This document shows positions 9,310-36,451 of a DNA stretch of 64,000 bases, piece by piece. Position 1 is the stretch's first letter, and each line of letters opens with the position of its first letter. The stretch covers positions 1 to 64,000 of the IMG/VR virus record IMGVR_UViG_3300029945_000001; one strand, written 5' to 3'. A program made the translations under genes and the position numbers. The notes beneath the pieces were generated by a model, which was not told the DNA's origin, did no database searches, and saw nothing but the letters and a program-made list of their open reading frames with translations.

Positions 9310-10185
9310 ATGGACCAGACAGTTAGGTATTCCGATGAATTGCGAGATAAGATTTTTAATAAATCATTTACTGATGAAGATATTGAAAAAATAAAAGCTA
9401 TTAAACAAGATAAAGATGCATTAGATAAATTTTCAGAGAAGATGATTACTGGCGGATTGATTACTCCAGATAATATCTATATCGATTTACAATATTTTAA
9501 AGATTTAAAATTAGGATCATTGATGTCTCTTTTGTATAAAGAGTCAAAGATAAACGACGTTTCTGAAAAGTTTAATAAAATTAAATTAAACATGCAAAAA
9601 TATACTGAAAGAAAAACGGACGATCTTTCTAAGTATTTTGATATTGGATATACTAATGATGATATTGATAATCACCTAAACGATCCTCAGTATTCTGATG
9701 AAATATTTATGTTATCTCCAGCTACAGCATTTATTCATGTATTATCATGTCAGACTCAAGTTAATGTTAATCATTCTGCTGTTATAGGAAAAAGAGATGT
9801 TATTACATTTACTGTTAATACTTATCCACTTAACTTGGGCAATACACCAAAACGTCTTCTTGGAGATTTTATCAATAGTGTCTATTATTGTAATTGTAAT
9901 GTAATTTATAAATCCCCTTCTGATATAGCTAAGACAATAAAAGATTATGATGAATTATACTTATTCAATCTTGATAAACTAAGTCAGATTGATTTATTTC
10001 AAAAACAATTTTCAGAATTAACTTTCTTAGGAAAACGTATTTTTGCTCCTGCATTATTTAAAGATGAACATTCTTATAAAATTGAAGAAAGTCAAGTAAA
10101 TGGATGGTTGAATTTAGGATGTGATTTTACATATGTTAGATCTGAACAGTTTTCTCCTGGTGTAGAAAAGGACAATAAGAAATGA
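9310..10185 (+). CDS. Hypothetical protein
   Basis: 291-aa ORF with AAGGA RBS; ATGA overlap with the gp181-like gene. Confidence 0.75.
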   Translation: MDQTVRYSDELRDKIFNKSFTDEDIEKIKAIKQDKDALDKFSEKMITGGLITPDNIYIDLQYFKDLKLGSLMSLLYKESKINDVSEKFNKIKLNMQKYTERKTDDLSKYFDIGYTNDDIDNHLNDPQYSDEIFMLSPATAFIHVLSCQTQVNVNHSAVIGKRDVITFTVNTYPLNLGNTPKRLLGDFINSVYYCNCNVIYKSPSDIAKTIKDYDELYLFNLDKLSQIDLFQKQFSELTFLGKRIFAPALFKDEHSYKIEESQVNGWLNLGCDFTYVRSEQFSPGVEKDNKK

Positions 10186-13100
10186 CAGACAGTATTTTTA
10201 ATGGATTAGGATTATCAGATTTAAAATCTATAGACAATTCATCTCCTCCTAGTATTCAGAAAGAACAAATTAAAGATATAAATACTCCAGTCAAATCTCC
10301 TACAACAAATATCATTGATGGATTAGATTTAGAAAGCGATAAATTAGATAACGTTATGAGTAAGATCAATAATACTTTTAAAACAAAGAATAGAGTGAAA
10401 GAATTAAGTATAGATTTGCATTCTATAGATTCTAATGCTTCTTTACAAAATACATCAGATTTACATTCATATATTCTAGATCGTAAAAAGATCGCTACTA
10501 ATTTAAATACAGCATTTAAAGGTTCTGTTAGTAAAGCTGTTTCTGGAGATAATGAAAAAACTAAAAATACTGGAGCTACTGTTAAAGGTGAGTTTGATCT
10601 TGCTATTAATACAATCATAAATGAAAAGATTTTACTAAATGGATTTACAACATTAAACAGAATTAATATAAATCAATTACAAGTCTTGAAGAACATAAAT
10701 AAATTTAATACATCTATCTTTACAAACTATCTCTCACAGAGCTTATCATTACAATACAAACAGACCGCATTGACCAAAGATTTATTAAATGTTACAAGAG
10801 CAGTTGGGGCTATCATTGAAGGTAAGTTAGATGCCATCAAAATAAATACTTCATTGTCTATACCTAAAAAAGAATCGATGATTGATCATATCAAAGGAAG
10901 TATCAAGAAATCTTTTTATGATAAAATAGGAAGGACTGTTATAGATACTGGATATGACCTTGGAAAAAAGCATCTATTTGATCCTACACTAACAGCAGTT
11001 AAAGATATTAGTTCTGGTAGAAAATCTGTAAAACAAGTTAAAGATGAATTATCTGCACATATGAAAAAACAATATGATCATTATTCTAAAAAAACTATAG
11101 ATCTTAAAAGACACAGCTTTGATGTAGCTAGAAGAAATGGTGGAAAAAGAACAGAGAACGTCCTTGATTTCTTAGATGATTCTGGTTCATATGTTAAAAA
11201 TAAATCGATGGCAGCATACTCATTCACTTTAGATAAATTACATGAATTTAATGAAAGTGATTTTAAGAAAGATATCATAAATAAATATGATACGACATCT
11301 AGACGTATTGGTGTAAATGCTAGAAATTATAAACGCAAATTTGACCATCTTCATCTTAAAGATCATATTGAAGAATTCATGTCAGATATGACTCCAGATA
11401 TGATTAAGAGATTGGCGAATGATAAGAAATTAAGAGATAGATATTTTAGAGCTAAAAAGAAACATATTCAAGATTTTATTAATAAGAATAAAACTGATTT
11501 AGGTGCTCATTATAGAGAAGTTGAAAAATCTTTAAAAGACAAAGTTACATGTTTTGAACAGTATGTAGATTCAAATGAATTTGTACATAAAAATCAAGTT
11601 AGATATAAAGCTTTAAAGCGCAAGATAAAAAGAACTGATTTCAAGAAAGAAATTACAAATAGTAAAAAATCAATTGGAAATAGATTAACAAATATTAAAA
11701 ATAGTATTTTTGATGATAATGATATTCATGATGATATTACTGAAGATTATGTTAATTCTTCACATTCTAATAAATCTCATATCGCCAATGACGATATTGA
11801 AATTCTTAAGTTATATATTAATGAAATTAATAACTACAATAGAACAGGATCTGGTAAGATTCCGAGTGATGTTAAGAAACTAGCTAATGAATTAGGACTC
11901 ATAAAGAAACAGTCTGTTAAGAATAAGGTTAGAAATCTTTCAAGTAGATATATTCCAAAAGCAGCTTCTAAATCAGAGTTTACAAGAATTACTAAAAATG
12001 TTAGATCTACAACTACGAATAGTTATAACACAGCAAAAGATAAAGTACGAGATACATACAACTCTATTACTGAAGATGGTGTTTTAAATAAGATTAGTAA
12101 ATTAAAATCTGGAATAGGAAATAAGATTCCATTATCTGAAGAAACACGAGATAAGATTTTAAGTTATCTTCCTGAAATTAATGCGCTTGCTGCTGGTAAG
12201 AAAATAGCCGGTGTTCCATTAGATGTTTTAGAGATTTGTGGAGAAGCTGGTATTCTCCCAAGCAAAATTGTTTCGGTCGCTAGATTGGCTGATAAAGCAG
12301 TTGATAAAGGATACTTGCATCATAGTGCTAAAGGTGTCACAAAGAGAGTTCTCAAAGGACAACTTGCTTATGGTACTGGTGGTTTGGGTGGTAGTTCTGA
12401 AGGAAATGGAATATATGGTGGTGGAGTCAATATAGATTTAAATCCGCTTAAAGAATCTATTGATAGTTTTCACCAATCATTTAGAACATTCAGTGCCGCA
12501 TCGTTAAAAGTTTTTAAATCTATGCAGACTGGTAGTGGTGCCACAGGGAATGGTTCTGGTAGCATAAATACTGTTCAAGAAAAAACTCGTATGCAAAAAA
12601 TTATGGGTAAACTTAAATTCTGGAAAAAAGATAATACACCCAATAATAAACCTGAAGAGATTGGAGATATTCATAAATTATTTAAAGCTGCTACTACGGT
12701 TGTTGGCGGGTCTGCTTCTGTCTATGGAAAATATTTAAAGTTTATGGGACATATTCCTGCCTTTGGTACAAAGGTATTGTTTGGAAAACATGAAAATGAT
12801 CCATTTGTTGATGTTTATAGGAAAGATCAGAGAGATGCAGGACATCCTCTTGTTACCAAAAAACAATTAGAAAAAGGATGCTATTTTAAAGATGGTAATC
12901 CTGTTAGAAATGTCTCTTATATTAAAGAACCTATTTTTGATAAGAAAGGTAATATGCTTGTTAGTGAAGAAGATATTAAAGCTGGATTAGTGGATATTAG
13001 AGGAAAGAATATAGCGAATCGTAAATTTACAATATCTCGATTTGGTAAAATGGCGGATATTACTGGTATGCTAGGAAGTAAAGCATTAGGTATTACTGGA

Positions 13101-16100
13101 TCTTTAGCTAAAGTTTATGGTCATACTTTACTTGGTTTAGGAAAGGCTGGTTTTGGTGCTGCTAAATTCTTAGGTGGAAAAGCTGTTGATTTATTAAACG
13201 GAGATGCTGTCAAGACATTAACAAAAGGCGGTGTTGGTTTAGCTGGTGTTCTTGGTAAGATGTATGGTGGTATGTTTGGTATGGGTTTAAAAGGATTGGG
13301 TGGTGCCGGTAAATTTGGAACTGGGTTATTGGGAAATATGTTAGGATTTAATAAAGGTGGTGGAAATAAGAAGGATCTTGAAGAAATAGTTGGTAGAAGA
13401 CTAGATACTATTATTGGTATTCTACATGGTAGTCATATACCAGTTCCTCCAAATTCTGGAAGAAATAGATTTAATAGAGTTGTTGGTGGAATGCATAATG
13501 TTGCTAATTTAAATAAAACAGTTAGAAATAAACTCAATGCAGTTATGAGAACAACTAGTCAATTAAGACCTAGAGCAGAATCACATATAGAACAGAATGC
13601 TGATAGACATCCAGCTCTTATGAATATTGTTAGTGCTAATAGTCTTAATCACTATGCTAATATGCAACATACTCCCGCTAATAATGTTGATCATGATAAT
13701 AATGATGAGCATCACGATAGTACAGCAGAGACACTTATCGAATTGGCTATTGGAAATTATTTAAAAGATAAAGCTATAAAAGGTGGTAAATATGTATTTG
13801 GTAAAACTGCTACTGGTGCAAAGTTTATTGGAAAAGGAGTTGGTAAAGGCGTAAGCCTTGCTGCAAAAGGAGTTGGTGCTTCTGCTAAAGTTGCCGGTAA
13901 AGGAGCTATGATTGTTGGTAAAGGTGCTGCAAAAGGAACATCTGCTGTGGTAAAAGGTGTTATTAATGTATTAGGAAAAACTAAGTATGGTAGGATGGTA
14001 TCAGCTGCTGCATTAACGGCAGGTGCTGGCTATGCTGCTTATAAAGGTATGAATAGAGCTGATACGAGAGCCAAAGAAGATCAGCGTAGTCTTTATGGAT
14101 CTGCTGGCGGTGCAGCACGAAATGCTGTTGCTACAGATGCTGCGGTTTATGGTGCTGCTGCTGTTGGTAGTAAACTTATTTCTAAAGCTGCTGGCAAACT
14201 CGGTATTGACATTGGTGCAAAATTAGCTGCTAGAGCTGGTGCTAAGCTTATTCCTGGTGTTGGTCTTGTACTAGGGACGGCTTCTGCTGTCATGCGGGCA
14301 CGGCGAGGCGATTATCTTGGTTCTGTATTAGAATTTGCAAGCGGTCTTGTTTCAACTGTTCCTTTCGTTGGTACTGCTATATCGGTTGGTATTGATGGTT
14401 ATTTAGCATATAGAGATTATAATAATTCTTATAAAGTTGCTGATCATTCACAGAAGTTTATTACAAAAGATCGTGTTACTGCATATGGCTTTGATGTGAG
14501 ATATAAAGAGGATGTTTTACAACTAGAACACGATGTTCATGTTGCTATGTCTGAAAAAGGAGCTAAAGTAACTAAAAGTAGATTAAGTTCTTTTGCTAAA
14601 CTGTTTGGACTACCTGATCTATCGAAAGATCCTATTGCATATAAATATTTCTTACTGTGGTATAATAATAGATTTGTTAATATCTTTTCAAGATACTGTG
14701 CTATTCTAAAATCATTTGGTTTACAGTATTCAGTACAAGACGAAGTAGATAAAAACACTATGAATAAAGTTATACCTGAGTTTCAAAAACAAACTGCTAA
14801 TATTGTTAATCAACATAAATCACTTGTATTATCTAAATCTGCGTTTGATAAATATAAAGCCGACTATGAAAAAAGTGAAAAAGATAAACAACAAAAAGAT
14901 AAAGATAAATTACATCCTAAAACTGTACCAAATACTACAACAGATAATAAAGATAATAGTAATTTAAAAGTATTAACGGCTCTAGAAGTTAGTAAACTTA
15001 AAACAACACAAGTAAATAAGATATCACCAGAACATTTTCCTGATAAAAATAGTAATAGTAATAGTAATAGTAATAAGTCTACTAAAAAAGTCGTAGCTAG
15101 TCATGTCATGACACCAGCCGAAGTTATTGCAAATAGATCAAATAAACTTCATGAAGATTCTCCAAGAGGATTCGATAGAGCAACTAAAACTGTTAAAGAA
15201 AATAATCCTAGAGATATTGCTAAGTTTAATAAGAAAGTTGTTGAAACTTCTGTTGATCAATCTAGTACGGTTTCTAAATATGTAAAAGCTAAAGATGATG
15301 AATATGGTCCTCATATGCCTTCTGGTCCTGCAAATGACAATTCAAAAACTGTTGTTGGTAATGATAATACTGCATTAATAAGTAAAGCCAAAACAGCAGT
15401 TGCTGCTCCTTCTACTCCGTCAAGTCCGGACAGTCTTGGTTCATTAAGTGCTAAATTTGAATCTTCTGCAAAAGGGTCTTCTGCTGTTGGTTATGATAAA
15501 GTTGGTGGAACGTCATATGGTAAGTATCAGATAGCGTCTGCGGTTGGTACATTTAGTGCGTTTATTAAGTTCTTAAAATCTCAACCTGGTAATGGTCCTA
15601 TTGTTGCACAGCGATTAGAATCTGCTGGTCGTGCTAATACTGGATCTAAATCCGGTACTGTTCCTGACGAATGGAAAAAAATTGTTAGTGAAGGATTAAT
15701 GAGTGATTATGAGCATGCATTCATTAAGAAAACTATATATGATAAAGCTCTTGATAAAATAAAAGGAAAAGCTAGAGAATACGTCGATAAATTTAAAGCA
15801 GTACAACAAGTATTGTGGTCAACTGCTGTTGGTAGTGGTGCCGGTGGCGCAGCAAATATATTTAATTCTGTTGGTGAAAAAGCACAAAATGTTTCAGAAT
15901 TTATTAAAGCTGTTTATGAAAAACGTAGTACTAAATATGGTAGTTCTACTGCTGGTGTACAAGCAAGTATGGTAAATAGATTTAAGGATGAATCTAAACT
16001 AGCACTTGGTATGATTGGTGGAGAGGGTGATAGTACTATGCAAGTTGCTAGTGCATCGACTCCTTCTGCTCCTACGACAGATACAAAACAGGCACCCGCT

Positions 16101-16658
16101 AGTTCTGGTGGTACACAACCGGTACAGACGGCATCTGCTTCTAGCGATTCTTCTGGTATCGCAGGGTCTGGTCCTAGCGTTGGCGAAACACAAGCTAGTC
16201 AGTCTATTGCAAAACAATCAATGCCGAGTTCAAGTGGTGGTAATTCATTAGCTATGAATGCTTTTAATGGTATGGATAATACGGTATCAACATCAAATAC
16301 TGTTGCACAGAGAAGAGGTGCAGTTGCTTCAACTGCTGCTAGAAACAGTACGATGTCTGCTAATTCTACTGCCAGAGATATTACAACAACTGCTAATACT
16401 GTTGCTGATACTGCAAAAAGTATTGCTTCATTGACAAACGTTATGAAAACTGCATTTGGCGTTAAACAAGATGGTACAAGCATAATGCATGATATGCATA
16501 AAACATTAGCTACTAATACTAAACAACCTCCGATGGTCAATATGCCCATTTCTACACATCAGGATAATCGTACTCAGGTTAGTCATAATGAAGAAAGTGG
16601 TAATAAAGATGCTTATGATGGTTTTGGTATAAACATTCAAAAACAGATGGTGGGGTAA
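10182..16658 (+). CDS. Large tail-associated/tape-measure-like protein with C-terminal muramidase (phiKZ gp181-like)
   Basis: 2158 aa; Gly/Ala/Lys-rich helical repeats; GAKLIPGVGL..VSTVPFVGT hydrophobic segment; lysozyme-like LGSLSAKFES..GGTSYGKYQI domain; divergent from the gp180-like gene as in phiKZ. Confidence 0.82.
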   Translation: MTDSIFNGLGLSDLKSIDNSSPPSIQKEQIKDINTPVKSPTTNIIDGLDLESDKLDNVMSKINNTFKTKNRVKELSIDLHSIDSNASLQNTSDLHSYILDRKKIATNLNTAFKGSVSKAVSGDNEKTKNTGATVKGEFDLAINTIINEKILLNGFTTLNRININQLQVLKNINKFNTSIFTNYLSQSLSLQYKQTALTKDLLNVTRAVGAIIEGKLDAIKINTSLSIPKKESMIDHIKGSIKKSFYDKIGRTVIDTGYDLGKKHLFDPTLTAVKDISSGRKSVKQVKDELSAHMKKQYDHYSKKTIDLKRHSFDVARRNGGKRTENVLDFLDDSGSYVKNKSMAAYSFTLDKLHEFNESDFKKDIINKYDTTSRRIGVNARNYKRKFDHLHLKDHIEEFMSDMTPDMIKRLANDKKLRDRYFRAKKKHIQDFINKNKTDLGAHYREVEKSLKDKVTCFEQYVDSNEFVHKNQVRYKALKRKIKRTDFKKEITNSKKSIGNRLTNIKNSIFDDNDIHDDITEDYVNSSHSNKSHIANDDIEILKLYINEINNYNRTGSGKIPSDVKKLANELGLIKKQSVKNKVRNLSSRYIPKAASKSEFTRITKNVRSTTTNSYNTAKDKVRDTYNSITEDGVLNKISKLKSGIGNKIPLSEETRDKILSYLPEINALAAGKKIAGVPLDVLEICGEAGILPSKIVSVARLADKAVDKGYLHHSAKGVTKRVLKGQLAYGTGGLGGSSEGNGIYGGGVNIDLNPLKESIDSFHQSFRTFSAASLKVFKSMQTGSGATGNGSGSINTVQEKTRMQKIMGKLKFWKKDNTPNNKPEEIGDIHKLFKAATTVVGGSASVYGKYLKFMGHIPAFGTKVLFGKHENDPFVDVYRKDQRDAGHPLVTKKQLEKGCYFKDGNPVRNVSYIKEPIFDKKGNMLVSEEDIKAGLVDIRGKNIANRKFTISRFGKMADITGMLGSKALGITGSLAKVYGHTLLGLGKAGFGAAKFLGGKAVDLLNGDAVKTLTKGGVGLAGVLGKMYGGMFGMGLKGLGGAGKFGTGLLGNMLGFNKGGGNKKDLEEIVGRRLDTIIGILHGSHIPVPPNSGRNRFNRVVGGMHNVANLNKTVRNKLNAVMRTTSQLRPRAESHIEQNADRHPALMNIVSANSLNHYANMQHTPANNVDHDNNDEHHDSTAETLIELAIGNYLKDKAIKGGKYVFGKTATGAKFIGKGVGKGVSLAAKGVGASAKVAGKGAMIVGKGAAKGTSAVVKGVINVLGKTKYGRMVSAAALTAGAGYAAYKGMNRADTRAKEDQRSLYGSAGGAARNAVATDAAVYGAAAVGSKLISKAAGKLGIDIGAKLAARAGAKLIPGVGLVLGTASAVMRARRGDYLGSVLEFASGLVSTVPFVGTAISVGIDGYLAYRDYNNSYKVADHSQKFITKDRVTAYGFDVRYKEDVLQLEHDVHVAMSEKGAKVTKSRLSSFAKLFGLPDLSKDPIAYKYFLLWYNNRFVNIFSRYCAILKSFGLQYSVQDEVDKNTMNKVIPEFQKQTANIVNQHKSLVLSKSAFDKYKADYEKSEKDKQQKDKDKLHPKTVPNTTTDNKDNSNLKVLTALEVSKLKTTQVNKISPEHFPDKNSNSNSNSNKSTKKVVASHVMTPAEVIANRSNKLHEDSPRGFDRATKTVKENNPRDIAKFNKKVVETSVDQSSTVSKYVKAKDDEYGPHMPSGPANDNSKTVVGNDNTALISKAKTAVAAPSTPSSPDSLGSLSAKFESSAKGSSAVGYDKVGGTSYGKYQIASAVGTFSAFIKFLKSQPGNGPIVAQRLESAGRANTGSKSGTVPDEWKKIVSEGLMSDYEHAFIKKTIYDKALDKIKGKAREYVDKFKAVQQVLWSTAVGSGAGGAANIFNSVGEKAQNVSEFIKAVYEKRSTKYGSSTAGVQASMVNRFKDESKLALGMIGGEGDSTMQVASASTPSAPTTDTKQAPASSGGTQPVQTASASSDSSGIAGSGPSVGETQASQSIAKQSMPSSSGGNSLAMNAFNGMDNTVSTSNTVAQRRGAVASTAARNSTMSANSTARDITTTANTVADTAKSIASLTNVMKTAFGVKQDGTSIMHDMHKTLATNTKQPPMVNMPISTHQDNRTQVSHNEESGNKDAYDGFGINIQKQMVG

Positions 16659-30830: not shown

Positions 30831-30910
30831 TATTTTGCATAGATAGATATAGAAGTCTCGTTTGTGCTAGATACGGCAAGGTATCTATAAGTAACTTGAG
30901 GAGAGCCATC

Positions 30911-31588
30911 ATGTCACTTAATCCCGAAGATGAACAGTTCGGCGATGATGGCGAGCAAGGAACTCCTAAGTTCGCCCTTCCTCCGAGAGAGCTTAAAGCT
31001 GTCCCGTTGGAGGCGACACCCGAACGAGTTGCGGAGCTTAATCGTCGAGGAACGGTTGTTGCCAATATCCTCAACGAACTTGTTCGGCAGGATGAGCTCG
31101 CAGGCTTTACGCCGGAACAAATCAAGATCCGACATAAAGCTCAGTACTACCAAGCTTTAGCATTACAGACGCTCAATCCGAACGCCTGCATCACAATTAT
31201 CGATCCTTTGGAGAATCTCGAAATGCCCAAGAACAACGAAACCCTCGTCGACATCGCCAATTCCCAGGCCGTCAACCTCGAAACCATCGAAGTGAAGCCC
31301 GAGATCATTCGACTCGAATCAGGCGAACTTGTGCAGGTCCTGCGTCTGTCGAACGGCCAGATCATTCCGCTCAATCAGCGTGGCGGCATCAACCAGACCA
31401 CCGGCAATCCCCAGATCATTTCCGTTCCGGCGGAAAAGGAAGAAGAAGAAGGTTATTCCTGGAAGAAGATCGCGCTCGGCGTGGTCGGCCTCGCCATCGT
31501 CGGCGGCGCCCTCTATTACGGCTACAAACAAATCAGCGGCAATTCCGAAGCTGTCGGCGATGTGGCCATGGCTCTGGCTGAAGTCTGA
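30911..31588 (+). CDS. Early, GC-rich protein with C-terminal membrane anchor (225 aa)
   Basis: GAGGAG RBS; WKKIALGVVGLAIVGGALYYGYK helix; codons end largely in C/G. Confidence 0.8.
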   Translation: MSLNPEDEQFGDDGEQGTPKFALPPRELKAVPLEATPERVAELNRRGTVVANILNELVRQDELAGFTPEQIKIRHKAQYYQALALQTLNPNACITIIDPLENLEMPKNNETLVDIANSQAVNLETIEVKPEIIRLESGELVQVLRLSNGQIIPLNQRGGINQTTGNPQIISVPAEKEEEEGYSWKKIALGVVGLAIVGGALYYGYKQISGNSEAVGDVAMALAEV

Positions 31589-31593
31589 TCGGC

Positions 31594-31630
31594 ATGGATG
31601 GGGGAGAGTAACATCTCCCCCTCCGTCCAT
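31594..31630 (+). terminator. Imperfect GC-rich hairpin with T-tract
   Basis: ATGGATGGGGGAGA...TCTCCCCCTCCGTCCAT then ttttatttttcttt. Confidence 0.65.
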
Positions 31631-32539: not shown

Positions 32540-34408
32540 TTATTTAATCTCCGTATTAACCGTATCTGGTATGATGATCTTGGAGGAATTAATGATCTTG
32601 GGAAGAACTTCCTTAAATCGTTTGATCATCTCAGAATACGTTTCAATTGGCTGTACCAATACAATATACTCAAGGTCTTCAACAGTAGGAGGAGTATCAC
32701 TATAAGAAAATATAAGTGTTTTTAAAATAGTAGATTCGGAAAGATAATAAGTTTCTTTGTTATTATGAAGTCTATAGCTGAAAATTTCTTCATCAAAATT
32801 AACATCTATGAGATCTTTTCTATCAATATCTGTATGGATAATTTCGAGAAGTTCTCTAAAGATGTGTGCGTATTGAGTAAATTTAGTACTGTATACACAG
32901 TTTAAATACATATTAGAAACACCATCAAGAATAAATCCAGATTCAATACTAGAGAGAACAGCACCAAATGAATCTTTAATGATCTGAAAATCTGTTAAGC
33001 ACTCATAACGAGCACCAGATATCGTAATAATTTTTGGTTTAACACAAACTAGCTTTCTATAGAAATTAATATATTCCCTTGCTAAGATATCATCATTGCC
33101 AGAATTAACTTGTTTATTACCAGAAGTGAGTTCTTCAATACGAGCTTTGAGTTCATCGACAAGTTCTGTATAGGGTCTAAACTTATTTCTGTTGAGATAA
33201 AATGGATGGAATCTATTGTTTGTCTTTTTATAAATATTATTGATTGTAATAAACTTGTCTTTATAATGAAACGAAGCATTCCGAATAATTGAATTCTCTA
33301 AAGGTTTATCATTCATATAGTTTTCAGCAACAGAATATTTACCAGAACAAGCAAGAATAGCTTTGAATAATAAAGCACCCTTTCCGGCCATAACATTACC
33401 CATAGCTGTAATAGGAATGATTTTGTTCTTATGTTTACGATTATAATTACGAGTAATATCATAAACTTGAGAATCAAAGTTGGGGCACATAAGAAGTAAT
33501 GTATTTTTAAGTTCTTCTTCATTTGTAATTCTTGTCAAATATTCCATAACCAGTGTATAATCCATAGAACCTGGAATAAGAGCGTCTTCAATAACAAGAA
33601 TATCGCATTTCTTATATATGCACTGAGTATCTAGTTTATAGTTCATATAGTCTTGGTTAAGTGTACCGTTAAACATAAAATCATAATTTTGTTCTTCAAC
33701 TGTAAATCTCTCAGAGGTTTCAAATGGAATCTGATTAACTGTGAACATACCATTAAATTCTTCAGGTAGGGATTCGACAACATCACAGATAGCTCTAGCA
33801 ATCTGATGATCGAACTTAGAAGAAATCATAGCTTGGTTATATGCAACAAAACGAATAGCTTCTTCTTTAGTAATATTAAAATGTTTAACAAGTGAAAATT
33901 CAGAATTGTCTATGGTAATGGCACCATCTTCAATACACGATTCGATAAAATCAATAAAGGCATTTAATTCATTAATGATTTCTTTGGATGATTTAATATC
34001 ATTAGAAATAATATTTAGAAATTTAAAATTCTCACGTTTAATTCTAAAGAAATGTTCAATGATACTTAGGAAAATATACATAGTCGATGTAGTACCATCT
34101 TTAGCTTTATCATCAATTCTATTTCCAATATACTTCAACAGATCAGAGATGTGATGCTGAACTCCATTAGCATATTCAATAGAACTAATAATCGTAATAC
34201 CATCATTCGTAAATAAATTATTATATTTTTCTCGATAGTTATTTCCATTAAATAAAACAATCATAGCATCAGATGCATCGGGGCCACAATGTTCTGACAA
34301 AAGATCTTTCATTTTAACACATGTATCAATAACAAAATCAACAAACTTCTTACCACTGATAATATTTAAACTATTCTTATCTCTATTCAGATTTGTTTTT
34401 TCTGACAT
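32540..34408 (-). CDS. groEL: Divergent phage chaperonin (Cpn60/TCP-1 family)
   Basis: CGP, TNDGITII, DKAKDGTTST nucleotide-site motifs; GFILDG and VQP in the C-terminal equatorial region; 622 aa. Confidence 0.75.
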   Translation of the reverse strand: MSEKTNLNRDKNSLNIISGKKFVDFVIDTCVKMKDLLSEHCGPDASDAMIVLFNGNNYREKYNNLFTNDGITIISSIEYANGVQHHISDLLKYIGNRIDDKAKDGTTSTMYIFLSIIEHFFRIKRENFKFLNIISNDIKSSKEIINELNAFIDFIESCIEDGAITIDNSEFSLVKHFNITKEEAIRFVAYNQAMISSKFDHQIARAICDVVESLPEEFNGMFTVNQIPFETSERFTVEEQNYDFMFNGTLNQDYMNYKLDTQCIYKKCDILVIEDALIPGSMDYTLVMEYLTRITNEEELKNTLLLMCPNFDSQVYDITRNYNRKHKNKIIPITAMGNVMAGKGALLFKAILACSGKYSVAENYMNDKPLENSIIRNASFHYKDKFITINNIYKKTNNRFHPFYLNRNKFRPYTELVDELKARIEELTSGNKQVNSGNDDILAREYINFYRKLVCVKPKIITISGARYECLTDFQIIKDSFGAVLSSIESGFILDGVSNMYLNCVYSTKFTQYAHIFRELLEIIHTDIDRKDLIDVNFDEEIFSYRLHNNKETYYLSESTILKTLIFSYSDTPPTVEDLEYIVLVQPIETYSEMIKRFKEVLPKIINSSKIIIPDTVNTEIK

Positions 34409-34841
34409 ACTTAATACCTTCCTTGTCTAATTTTTGTTTTCTTTGTTCTTCTTCATATTCTTTAATACGACGTTCATTATCTTCTATGATTATTTTTTCT
34501 AATACAGTAAATCTATGATACGTTAATTTCATAGTTTCTTTTAAGTTTAATCCAAACTTAGTATGCCATTCTGTATTGAATAAAATATTAGCTACCTTCT
34601 TATAAAGTTTATTAAACTCCCAATGCTTAGATCTATTATGAAAACCAACATCTGACATATATGGTAATAGTGAATCAATATGAAGAGTTTCTTCATTAAT
34701 AGCTTGTAATAGCGAAGTTCTTACAATACCGTAAATACCTCTTAAATTTAATTCTCGAATAAGATTCTCTTTTTTATTAATACTTGCTTCTACTTCTTCT
34801 TGTGTAACATCATCAATCGAGTCTGCGACTGAATAAAAAAA
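34383..34841 (-). CDS. -1 frame extension ('T' segment) of a putative tail assembly chaperone; first in-frame ATG only at 34658
   Basis: The frame is open from the T7 run at 34841 to the stop at 34383. C-terminal WHTKFGLNLKETMKL resembles gpGT/E'-type tails. Confidence 0.6.
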   Translation of the reverse strand, partial: FFYSVADSIDDVTQEEVEASINKKENLIRELNLRGIYGIVRTSLLQAINEETLHIDSLLPYMSDVGFHNRSKHWEFNKLYKKVANILFNTEWHTKFGLNLKETMKLTYHRFTVLEKIIIEDNERRIKEYEEEQRKQKLDKEGIKYVRKNKSE

Positions 34842-36451
34842 GTGGTTTCGGGGTCCACCGTATAAAACCCTTCAGAATAGGTTTCAGGAGTATGACCACA
34901 ATGAGGGCAAGATTTAACCGGATAGCAAATATGAGAAATCTCAGACTTACCAATAAACTTTTCAACATCTTGAGGAAGATTACATCCAGGATTACGCTTA
35001 AACAGAATAGATAAACCTTCATTAATAACAGATTCTTCAGTACTTTCTTTATTCACCTTACCATTCTTAACAATACGGATTTTACTAATATAGGGAACGT
35101 ATGATTTAAATAAGGAATACTTCAAAGCAATATCAATTGAATCTCTACGCTCTTTATCATTATTACCATGTTCTTGTGCAATGATTTCAGAAACAAAACG
35201 ACGGCCATATTCAAGATATTGTTTAATAGACGGAATACTGAATTCAAATTCAAACTGAACATTATCAGAAACAGTATAACGACCAGTGTCTTTGAACCCT
35301 AAGAGTTCTTGATACTTGGTATACATATCAGGAGTAACAGTTTTCATGCTCTTAAGATTAAAGATATTATCAACCTTCATTTTACTAAAATCATTACGAC
35401 GAAGTTTAATGATATTAATCAGTTCAGTGACAGAATTATTGCATGACGTACAAACATAAGTATAATTATAACCTTCGGGATGCATAAGCGCCGCAAGTGT
35501 CAACATAATAACAGGATAATCAGTAATCTTAATATTTGAAATAAGAGTGTCTTCGAGACGCCAATTACTCAGATTAGTCCCAACTGTAGAATCTAAGAAC
35601 AGACGAGTACCTTCTTCTTTAATAAAGAAATCATTAAACAAATAGAAAACAACACCAAGTTCACGACCATAAACATTAATAGATTCATAGGCATTATTAA
35701 AATATGCATTTAATTTATCCATATCAGGATGTGCCAATTCAATATTAAAACCACTATTCATAAGAGGAATACGCATACAGTCACTAACTTCGAACCTGAC
35801 TTCATTAAGACCGTCAATAGAATCAATAATACGAATATCATTATGATCAGTAGGTTTAACAGTATAGCGATTACCAAGAATACCTTTACCCTTATCATCG
35901 ATATATGTAGGAGCAAACATACTCTTATTTTCAATATCTTTAATAGCTAATTGTCGGCGAATAGCTTCTGTTTCAAAAGGAGTATTATTCTGAGTACCAC
36001 GTACTGTATTAATAAATGCCTGAGCGACAGGATCGGTATCGATCTTATCTTCGGGAATATCACTGAAATAAGCATTCATTGCCTTAATAACATCTTCACT
36101 TTTCTGACCAATAAAATACCCTGTATTCTCAGCCATTAATTCAAAATTAGCTTTATCGACAATATCGTTTTCAGTTTCCACTGAACCATCTTCGGCGATT
36201 TCGTCGTAGAAAGGCTCAGCTTCAACATCGTCGATATCATCAGAAACAACAATAACTTTATTTTCTAAAGGAGTTTTATCAGAAGAATTATTAGTTTCAT
36301 TATTTGATTCGAGTTCAGTAGTTAAAGATTCTTCATTACCACTAACGCTATTAACCACACCACCACTTCCACCATCCATGGTAAATGTTGGAGTTATTTT
36401 TAAAATATCTTTATCTAACAGATTATCAGTTTTGTTAGGATCGTCGGACAT
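34790..36451 (-). CDS. Tail/baseplate assembly chaperone-like protein (T4 gp26-like Zn pairs)
   Basis: Acidic N-terminus, IPLMNSGF, PEGY..CTSC and CPHC, ending DPETTFF at a slippery site. Confidence 0.6.
   Translation of the reverse strand: MSDDPNKTDNLLDKDILKITPTFTMDGGSGGVVNSVSGNEESLTTELESNNETNNSSDKTPLENKVIVVSDDIDDVEAEPFYDEIAEDGSVETENDIVDKANFELMAENTGYFIGQKSEDVIKAMNAYFSDIPEDKIDTDPVAQAFINTVRGTQNNTPFETEAIRRQLAIKDIENKSMFAPTYIDDKGKGILGNRYTVKPTDHNDIRIIDSIDGLNEVRFEVSDCMRIPLMNSGFNIELAHPDMDKLNAYFNNAYESINVYGRELGVVFYLFNDFFIKEEGTRLFLDSTVGTNLSNWRLEDTLISNIKITDYPVIMLTLAALMHPEGYNYTYVCTSCNNSVTELINIIKLRRNDFSKMKVDNIFNLKSMKTVTPDMYTKYQELLGFKDTGRYTVSDNVQFEFEFSIPSIKQYLEYGRRFVSEIIAQEHGNNDKERRDSIDIALKYSLFKSYVPYISKIRIVKNGKVNKESTEESVINEGLSILFKRNPGCNLPQDVEKFIGKSEISHICYPVKSCPHCGHTPETYSEGFYTVDPETTFFIQSQTRLMMLHKKK

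Follow-up and report, generated by a model that had tools for sequence, protein, structure and literature searches.

A gene pair of phiKZ-like jumbo phages carries a conserved in-frame slippery heptamer from which these phages likely produce a second, longer protein by programmed -1 frameshifting. The site lies in the 64,000-nucleotide stretch of virus record IMGVR_UViG_3300029945_000001 (positions 1 to 64,000) that was analyzed here and is referred to as the window. The heptamer U_UUU_UUY is kept at the same conserved Phe-Phe in 27 of 30 related lineages, including phiKZ, and both a 553-aa protein and a predicted 689-aa transframe fusion appear to be under selection. As all of the evidence is comparative, with no transframe protein or ribosome footprint observed, ribosomal slippage remains an inference. 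A sequence-only reading had drawn attention to this site, and its description of the locus is confirmed by our analysis. Its interpretation was supported only in part: the unannotated -1 frameshift fusing the two ORFs is strongly supported by comparative evidence, but the proposal that the pair represents a jumbo-phage G/GT-type tail assembly chaperone is not supported.

The slippery heptamer and the open -1 frame

The 553-aa ORF ends with ACT TTT TTT ATT, followed by 14 codons and TAG. The -1 frame is closed upstream of the slip site and then stays open for 162 codons, of which 150 follow the slip, and it contains no ATG, GTG or TTG until an ATG 59 codons after the slip. The predicted fusion therefore comprises 539 + 150 = 689 aa, as the sequence-only reading had proposed. 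Only 9 of 9353 stop-to-stop runs in the window have a start-less leader of 70 codons or more, and most of those are antisense shadows of long genes. The T7 run is not an assembly error as far as could be determined: it is identical in a Logan contig of depth 98, which showed no indel variants, in a Logan contig from an independent sample, in five IMG/VR contigs and in one JGI contig.

Coordinates of the features at the frameshift locus within the window
Position (strand)	Feature	Description
34790..36451 (-)	0-frame gene	553-aa protein of the phiKZ gp77 family (phrog_4585); residues 1-110 predicted disordered, core 160-553; Cys pairs C334/C337 and C515/C518; C-terminal helix 534-552
34835..34841 (-)	In-frame slippery heptamer U_UUU_UUU	Last base of ACT plus the two TTT codons of the conserved Phe538-Phe539
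34386..34835 (-)	-1 frame coding region	150 aa, starting YSVADSIDD; helical domain, compared with the phiKZ gp76.4 / phrog_12109 family in the text; stop codon at 34383..34385
34790..34834 (-)	Dual-coding overlap	14 codons plus stop of the 0-frame tail (IQSQTRLMMLHKKK*) and the first 15 codons of the -1 product
34872..34874 (-)	TGA closing the -1 frame	11 codons upstream of the slip site; no canonical start between it and 34658
34383..34658 (-)	91-aa ORF as listed mechanically	C-terminal 91 codons of the -1 domain; ATG without Shine-Dalgarno-like motif; a start here would remove the conserved N-terminal 59 residues
34813..34832 (-)	Small hairpin TCAGTCG/CGATTGA	Weak, 2 nt after the heptamer, not conserved; probably irrelevant
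32540..34408 (-)	GroEL-like chaperonin gene	Downstream; overlaps the end of the -1 ORF by 26 nt; same gene order in the closest relatives

The hairpin, which the sequence-only reading had noted after the slip site, exists, but its centroid energy is only -6.7 kcal/mol and the region folds no better than shuffled sequences (z = +0.86). It starts only 2 nt after the heptamer, whereas a stimulatory hairpin or pseudoknot would be expected 5-9 nt away. Across lineages, downstream folds had a mean z of -0.65 without a common structure, and RNAalifold predicted 0 consensus pairs in the close clade. Some single lineages, such as Goslar and RP12, do have a stable hairpin, but neither a conserved hairpin or pseudoknot nor a conserved upstream Shine-Dalgarno-like element was found, and the efficiency of frameshifting may therefore be low (PMC4066793 puts these two heptamers above 0.10% without stimulators).

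Conservation across jumbo-phage lineages

Conservation of the heptamer and of the -1 overlap among homologous gene pairs had been named beforehand as a test of the frameshift, and we examined it in 30 diverged lineages with 15-36% protein identity and 30-55% GC, including phiKZ gp77/gp76.4, 201phi2-1 gp136/135, RAY gp267/266 and Goslar gp81/82. Of these, 27 have an in-frame U_UUU_UUY at the homologous Phe-Phe, whereas three have a degraded heptamer and retain only U_UUC. All 30 keep the -1 frame open through a homologous downstream helical domain of 130-180 aa, although in one lineage (L022) the frame could be followed for only 96 codons to the end of the contig. In contrast, the +1 control frame is open for 16 codons or fewer in 24 of the 26 loci where it was measured from the site, and for 57 and 60 codons in two GC-rich genomes. 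Local codon usage cannot explain the heptamer: the first Phe codon is TTT in 26 of 26 lineages tallied, the preceding codon ends in T in 25 of 26, and RSL2 uses TTT for 0 of its 18 other Phe codons (joint log10 P about -22). The only variation at heptamer position 7 is U or C, i.e., the H_HH.U_UU.Y class, which is among the most efficient -1 motifs in E. coli, while U7 is otherwise avoided in genes (PMC4066793). The 0-frame tail (FF[TI]xSxx[KR]L) is also conserved and about 150 homologues end there, indicating that the short product is selected as well.

The 553-aa protein matches phrog_4585 at E 2e-36 over the conserved C-terminal 330 residues, a HMMER search returned 695 hits, and tblastn reached PHIKZ077 through Goslar gp81. 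No direct DNA similarity to known phages was found, and a word-based protein search with the 553-aa protein recovered only a partial near-identical copy. Homology of the -1 products became apparent only with profiles. Pairwise BLASTP of the -1 stretch against Goslar gp82 and MJ359 gp136 gave nothing, and a word-based search with the small-domain profile found two relatives and the window's own 91-aa ORF. The -1 ORFs of phiKZ, LucasX, RAY and Goslar hit phrog_12109 directly, and the start-less "intergenic" region of phiKZ, 219 nt between gp77 and gp76.4, matches the N-terminal half of this family. The window's domain has no direct PHROG hit, and the profile of its clade matched the profile of the cultured-phage domain with an hhalign probability of 83% (E 9.5e-6) over 62 columns.

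A conserved independent start was not found. The first ATG, GTG or TTG lies 8 to 108 codons after the slip, almost never with a Shine-Dalgarno motif, and at 59 or more codons in 8 lineages, including the window and phiKZ. However, several lineages have a start codon shortly after the slip site (201phi2-1 at +8, lineage L009 at +11, RP12 at +14), and there the small protein could also be made on its own. Complex prediction placed the small domain on the large protein with an ipSAE of 0.40 against 0.00 for the best control, which the tool rates as weak support; this mark was reached by 58 of 80 solved complexes and 2 of 110 mismatched pairs.

Two proposed isoforms and alternative explanations

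We consider it likely that the site is a programmed -1 ribosomal frameshift site conserved across phiKZ-like (Chimalliviridae and related uncultured) jumbo phages. In this view, most ribosomes would read the gp77-family gene in frame and stop 14 codons after the conserved Phe-Phe, while a fraction, with tRNA-Phe in both the P and A sites at U_UUU_UUU, would slip back one base and continue for 150 codons. In the resulting 689-aa protein (the corresponding phiKZ junction peptide would read ...STFFYFGGLEVK...) the last helix would be replaced by a linker plus a helical domain that other phages annotate, often truncated, as a separate small gene (phiKZ gp76.4, 201phi2-1 gp135, Goslar gp82). The two isoforms would share about 539 residues, with the fusion probably the minor one. 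The heptamer, the open -1 frame, the conservation of both, selection on the nucleotides, homology of the -1 domain and conservation of the 0-frame tail are established by the sequence comparisons, whereas the ribosomal nature of the slippage, its efficiency and the function of the products are inferred. Functionally, we infer a non-virion assembly or chaperone-like protein with a predicted T4 gp26/gp51-like fold, whose long isoform carries a domain that may dock back on the core or oligomerize.

Transcriptional slippage on the T-run would yield the same protein and cannot be excluded, but we regard it as unlikely. In this scenario, the phage or host RNA polymerase would stutter on the run and add one U to a fraction of mRNAs. 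The site is indeed a homopolymer of 7 T (8 in RSL2), homopolymer runs are slippage sites, cited in PMC4066793 as a reason for the avoidance of U7 in genes, no stimulatory RNA structure is conserved, and these phages use their own unusual RNA polymerases. However, six lineages have T6 followed by C, which keeps the X_XXY_YYZ rule exactly but shortens the run, and three more keep only U_UUC, a pattern that fits tRNA re-pairing and not run length. Well-documented bacterial transcriptional slippage usually needs runs of about 9 or more. Less likely still are two separate genes, with the small protein starting at a non-canonical codon or by reinitiation and the T-run as a by-product of the conserved Phe-Phe. 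Many public records annotate two genes, some lineages offer ATG or TTG 8-14 codons after the slip site, and in AT-rich genomes Phe-Phe is usually TTT TTT anyway. Yet the codon-usage statistics reject a by-product, including in genomes that almost never use TTT, the -1 frame is always in phase and open from the heptamer itself, the first canonical start in 8 lineages would remove 59-108 conserved residues, and the gene caller found no small gene at all in lineage L011. Homopolymers are error-prone, but that a homopolymer error or a recent inactivating indel interrupts a single 689-aa gene, which one extra T would restore, is all but ruled out by the eight assemblies from different samples, the same arrangement in 30 diverged lineages sequenced by many laboratories, and the conserved 0-frame ending.

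The G/GT reading, in which the pair would chaperone the tape measure protein, is very unlikely. A -1 frameshift near the 3' end would give a C-terminally extended second product, as in G/GT, and the predicted fold resembles proteins that NCBI names baseplate hub assembly chaperones, a partial vindication at fold level only. However, the upstream protein is about 4 times larger than G proteins of about 140 aa, and neither part has a tail assembly chaperone match in Pfam or PHROGs, with fold searches returning such hits only at E above 3 and probability below 0.1. The pair lies between a divergent family B DNA polymerase and a chaperonin in the window, and in phiKZ between gp78 and the gp76.x genes and helicase gp75. 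It is not next to tube or tape-measure genes in the window, phiKZ, Goslar or the relatives, which show the same synteny. The Churi/phiKZ orthologue is listed among early-expressed proteins (PMC11849849). Absence from virions, like any binding to tape measure or tail tube proteins, is at best inferred; the only indirect hints are that a word search of the Goslar virion cryo-EM paper found no match for gp81 and gp82, and that 201phi2-1 gp136 carries no mass-spectrometry note whereas its neighbor gp138 does.

A broader reading, which we regard as probable, is that this recoding event is a universal feature of phiKZ-like nucleus-forming jumbo phages and their uncultured relatives. The gp77-family gene and the small gene after it would then be one translational unit, the conserved N-terminal half of the small domain could in model phages such as phiKZ be expressed only in this way, and the long isoform would be a required, stoichiometrically limited form of a gp26/gp51-like assembly factor. 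A search of the window's genome for phiKZ chimallin returned no match, which does not decide whether one is present. Programmed -1 frameshifting itself is an established phenomenon, but no paper or annotation describing it for this gene pair was found in literature on phiKZ, Chimalliviridae or jumbo phages, subscription journals not being covered. If correct, it would add a deeply conserved programmed frameshift to a much-studied phage group (phiKZ, 201phi2-1, Goslar, RAY and related phages), link two proteins of unknown function into one unit and correct the annotation of the pair in the 160 phage records that carry it; PHIKZ076.4, for example, would be a truncated call inside a 165-codon transframe extension. 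It would also be a clean natural example of a U_UUU_UUY site kept over very long divergence without a conserved stimulatory structure.

Comparison with known systems

The direct orthologues phiKZ gp77 (PHIKZ077) and PHIKZ076.4, 201phi2-1 gp136 and gp135, RAY gp267 and gp266, and Goslar gp81 and gp82 share the heptamer at the same Phe-Phe and the -1 continuity into the small domain, although identity to the window's protein is only 21-25%. All are annotated as separate hypothetical proteins, with differing and often truncated or overlapping starts, and none as ribosomal slippage.

Searches for structural relatives gave little beyond the T4 baseplate proteins. The sequence profile against PDB returned only a spurious repeat match, Foldseek against PDB and AFDB Swiss-Prot and the VIA wide search gave nothing above noise for either domain, and the small domain had only weak fold matches to its own family. 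In contrast, the predicted fold of residues of about 200-553 matches many proteins of PF12322 (T4_baseplate; T4 gp26/gp51, NCBI "gp26 family baseplate hub assembly chaperone") at Foldseek E 1e-5 to 1e-3 and TM by target of 0.50-0.58. In BFVD, more than 15 named baseplate hub (assembly) proteins were found in the same E range with TM by target of 0.45-0.58, and the ESM Atlas structure row for PF12322 has TM 0.60 by the row, both sides being predicted models. The motifs are collinear (CxC/CxxC ... P ... CPxCG ... FF near the C-terminus). However, neither the window protein nor any of 53 family members has a Pfam hit to PF12322 even at E up to 1, and the profile-profile comparison is not significant (hhalign probability 1.3%, E 0.042). 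Against a single gp26 sequence only the CPxCG motif aligned (probability 34%). The protein is also 2-3 times longer, T4 gene 26 ends GAG TTC TTT GAG without a slippery heptamer, and genomic context and reported expression timing differ.

With phage lambda gpG/gpGT and other tail assembly chaperone frameshifts, as reportedly described (Xu et al. 2004), the site shares a -1 slip at an X_XXY_YYZ heptamer near the end of the upstream ORF, two products with a common N-terminal part, conservation across many phages and a long form that is probably the minor one. It differs in its upstream protein of 480-850 aa with a Zn-ribbon-like Cys4 site, compared with a helical protein of about 140 aa, in the lack of a tail assembly chaperone family match, in its location, which is not between tail tube and tape measure genes, and in the heptamer, which is U_UUU_UUY rather than the G_GGA_AAG type. 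E. coli dnaX tau/gamma and the IS3-family OrfA/OrfAB frameshifts (reviewed in PMC5009743; motif rules in PMC4066793) likewise use bacterial tandem-slippage heptamers, which there set a fixed ratio of two isoforms, and U_UU.U_UU.C is used by some IS elements. Those sites have defined stimulators, i.e., an upstream Shine-Dalgarno-like element and a downstream hairpin or pseudoknot, none of which is conserved here.

The proposed slip site and its reproduction in independent assemblies

The 553-aa ORF ends ...GAC CCC GAA ACC ACT TTT TTT ATT CAG..., followed by TAG, and its heptamer T TTT TTT is in the X_XXY_YYZ register with fourteen codons following in frame. The -1 frame is closed by a TGA upstream of the heptamer and is then open for 162 codons; from the slip it reads Y-S-V-A-D-S-I-D-D... 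and runs into the listed 91-aa ORF. No ATG, GTG or TTG occurs before an ATG 59 codons after the slip, and this ATG has no Shine-Dalgarno-like motif, whereas the ATG of the overlapping GroEL-like chaperonin gene is preceded by AAGGAAGG. The fusion would be 539 + 150 = 689 aa, with a predicted junction across ...TFF|Y..., i.e., ...STFFYFGGLEVK... in phiKZ and ...TTFFYSVADSIDDVTQEEVEASINK in the window phage. The short and long products of the window gene are expected at about 63 and 79 kDa, respectively. The small hairpin described by the sequence-only reading exists but is weak (centroid -6.7 kcal/mol) and starts 2 nt after the heptamer, and the region folds no better than shuffled sequence (z +0.86). 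Overall, every statement of fact in that reading was found to be correct, and its observation is confirmed.

Coordinates of the features discussed in the window and in reference genomes
Feature	Genome	Position	Strand
553-aa ORF (0 frame)	window	34790..36451	minus
Heptamer T TTT TTT	window	34841..34835	minus
TGA closing the -1 frame upstream	window	34874..34872	minus
First ATG in the -1 frame	window	34658	minus
Stop of the -1 frame	window	34385..34383	minus
Overlap (26 nt) of the end of the -1 ORF with the start of the GroEL-like chaperonin gene	window	34383-34408	
GC-rich island	window	30850-31600	
230-aa ORF in the GC-rich island	window	30896..31588	plus
147-codon start-less open frame	window	31138..31581	
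2159-codon ORF	window	10179-16658	plus
gp77/gp76.4 locus	phiKZ (AF399011)	71442-73504	
Gap without a called gene	L011 (metagenomic relative)	4482-4940	
Gene 26 locus	T4	115802-116428	

The window is part of a 208-kb IMG/VR virus record from peat metagenomes, estimated to be 91% complete and with 31% GC. Logan contigs from a run at depth 98 and from an independent sample cover the site with no differences or indels, and five IMG/VR contigs and one JGI contig from other samples carry the identical site, indicating that the T run is not an artefact. A direct protein search with phiKZ chimallin (gp54) gave no match in the whole 208-kb record, and this phage may therefore be either a nucleus-forming chimallivirus or a more distant relative that shares the gp77 module, the divergent DNA polymerase and the chaperonin. 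Elsewhere in the window, a GC-rich island (50-57% GC against 23-30% in the flanks) has all six frames open and contains an ORF with a hydrophobic C-terminal segment, which may be a recently acquired gene; the island also explains a long start-less open frame within it. A 2159-codon ORF, presumably the gene that the sequence-only reading called tape-measure-like, casts many long start-less antisense open frames.

Comparison across 30 lineages

The large protein matches phrog_4585 (unknown function, E 2e-36) and no Pfam family. An exhaustive HMMER search found 695 relatives, and in essentially all of the best 150 the match ends at query residue 540-549 and within a few residues of the C-terminus of the target. 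The family therefore ends where the 0-frame ORF ends, and the tail after the Phe-Phe is itself conserved (FF[TI]xSxx[KR]L...). Orthologues in cultured phages were identified by tblastn and comprise phiKZ PHIKZ077, 201phi2-1 gp136, RAY gp267, Goslar gp81 and genes in LucasX, RSL2, RP12, BONAISHI, PA1C, Machina, SA002, 2050HW and others. In the closest metagenomic relatives (33-36% identity) the gene order is the same as in the window, i.e., divergent DNA polymerase, two small genes, the large gene, a small gene of about 120 aa, then a chaperonin.

We compared 30 lineages with 15-36% identity to the window protein and locus GC of 30-55%, comprising the window itself, 14 metagenomic loci and 15 cultured phages. 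In 27 of these the homologous Phe-Phe is encoded NNU UUU UUY; 21 are U7 (RSL2 has U8) and 6 are U_UUU_UUC. The remaining three, PA1C and the lineages L045 and L044, have lost the P-site part of the heptamer (AUA UUU UUC, CAG UUU UUC and CUG CUU UUC, respectively) but keep the U_UUC tetramer and the open -1 frame, which may reflect relaxed or lower-level shifting where an independent start exists. In all 30 the -1 frame is open from the site for 130-180 codons through the downstream small gene, although one lineage reaches the contig end at 96. The +1 frame, measured from the site in 26 of them, closes within 16 codons in 24 and runs 57 and 60 codons in two GC-rich genomes. Codon usage cannot explain the heptamer: the first Phe codon is TTT in 26 of 26 lineages tallied and the preceding codon ends in T in 25 of 26, even in RSL2, RP12 and 2050HW, which use TTT for 0-17% of the other Phe codons in the same gene. 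Treating lineages as independent gives log10 P = -22.

The first canonical start in the -1 ORF lies anywhere from 8 to 108 codons after the slip, almost never with a Shine-Dalgarno motif, and is 59 or more codons in for 8 lineages. These include the window, phiKZ at +85 and L011 at +108, where the gene caller found no gene at all and left a 458-nt gap. The -1 polypeptides are homologous. In the window's clade, the region right after the slip aligns with the N-termini of the separately called proteins of the loci L009 and L010, and the conserved GI(D)R.S..I..FNE motif lies upstream of the window's ATG. The start-less 219-nt stretch annotated as intergenic in phiKZ matches the N-terminal half of phrog_12109, and PHIKZ076.4 (80 aa) is the C-terminal half of a 165-codon -1 ORF that begins at the gp77 heptamer. 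The window-clade profile matches the cultured-phage profile at 83% probability, E 9.5e-6. The short overlap is conserved in both frames. In 9 of 10 aligned sequences of the close clade (loci L009-L023 and L046 and the window), all but the window itself, which has 14, the 0-frame stop lies exactly 10 codons after the heptamer, within a conserved GAAATTAAC..GA(A/G)TTAA stretch that codes in both frames. Together this is the signature of a selected recoding site, with both the short and the long product under selection.

None of the phage records inspected annotates slippage at this site. Instead, two hypothetical proteins with inconsistent starts are annotated: phiKZ 076.4 is truncated to 80 aa, RAY gp266 starts at a TTG 135 nt inside gp267, and 201phi2-1 gp135 starts at a TTG 8 codons after the slip. 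Full-text literature searches found no description of this frameshift, although they left out most subscription journals and a prior description cannot be fully excluded.

Proposed mechanism of slippage and predicted folds

The only variation tolerated at the seventh position of the heptamer is U or C. Sharma et al. 2014 place H_HH.U_UU.Y among the most efficient -1 heptamers in E. coli, list U_UU.U_UU.U and U_UU.U_UU.C as shifting at more than 0.10% without stimulators, and note that U7 is strongly avoided in genes and that U_UU.Y is the second-best tetramer (PMC4066793). This fits ribosomal tandem slippage of two tRNA-Phe, which would also explain why lineages with a degraded P-site position still keep U_UUC. 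No conserved stimulator was found: downstream folds have a mean z of only -0.65 and no common shape, RNAalifold finds no consensus pair in the close clade, and no Shine-Dalgarno-like element is conserved upstream, although some single lineages such as Goslar, RP12 and L025 have a stable hairpin 7-10 nt downstream. Transcriptional slippage would give the same protein; it is disfavoured by the T6C variants but not excluded, and we consider it unlikely, whereas ribosomal frameshifting is the probable explanation. The interpretation offered by the sequence-only reading is thus supported in part, as the frameshift has strong comparative support but the assignment to G/GT-type tail assembly chaperones is not supported. 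The site, its open frames and their conservation are established by the sequence comparisons, while the ribosomal nature of the slippage and the function of both parts of the product are inferred.

An AlphaFold2 model of the large protein built with 53 homologues is confident (pLDDT 79, pTM 0.78), with a disordered N-terminal 110 residues. The Phe-Phe sits at the start of the last predicted helix, 534-552, and the fusion would therefore replace that helix. No solved-structure match was found. In BFVD, after the protein's own family, more than 15 proteins named baseplate hub subunit or hub assembly protein match at E 1e-5 to 1e-3 with TM by target of 0.45-0.58, and the ESM Atlas gives the same lead, PF12322. 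T4 gp26 and gp51 both match PF12322 and so look like paralogues, and NCBI names the family 'baseplate hub assembly chaperone'. T4 gp26 ends CPECG...FFELL, which recalls the CPxCG...FF of the large-protein family. However, Pfam and profile-profile tests are negative, and T4 gene 26 ends ...KEFFELL with TTC TTT, which is not a slippery site; gene 25 starts at an ATG that overlaps the gene 26 stop (TAATG). Moreover, the genomic neighbours are replication and transcription genes and a chaperonin, and the Churi orthologue of phiKZ gp077 is listed among early-expressed proteins (PMC11849849). We conclude that the predicted fold is gp26/gp51-like and that an assembly or chaperone role is plausible but not shown.

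The -1 domain is predicted to be all-helical with a long C-terminal helix (pLDDT 71) and has no informative fold match. Complex prediction puts its conserved core on helices 241-252 and 322-326 of the large protein, with residues 74-81 and 101-109 of the small domain at the predicted interface. The score, ipSAE 0.40 against 0.00 for the best control, is rated as weak support; in calibration this mark was reached by 58 of 80 solved complexes and 2 of 110 mismatched pairs.

Relation to known frameshift systems

While -1 frameshifting is an established mechanism, its inferred occurrence in this widely conserved gene of a prominent phage family appears to be new. In this view, the expression logic is that of lambda G/GT, dnaX and IS3 OrfAB, i.e., a fixed ratio of two isoforms that share an N-terminal body. 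Membership in the G/GT tail assembly chaperone family is not supported, as position, size and family or fold membership were each tested and did not agree with it, and only the frameshift feature is shared.
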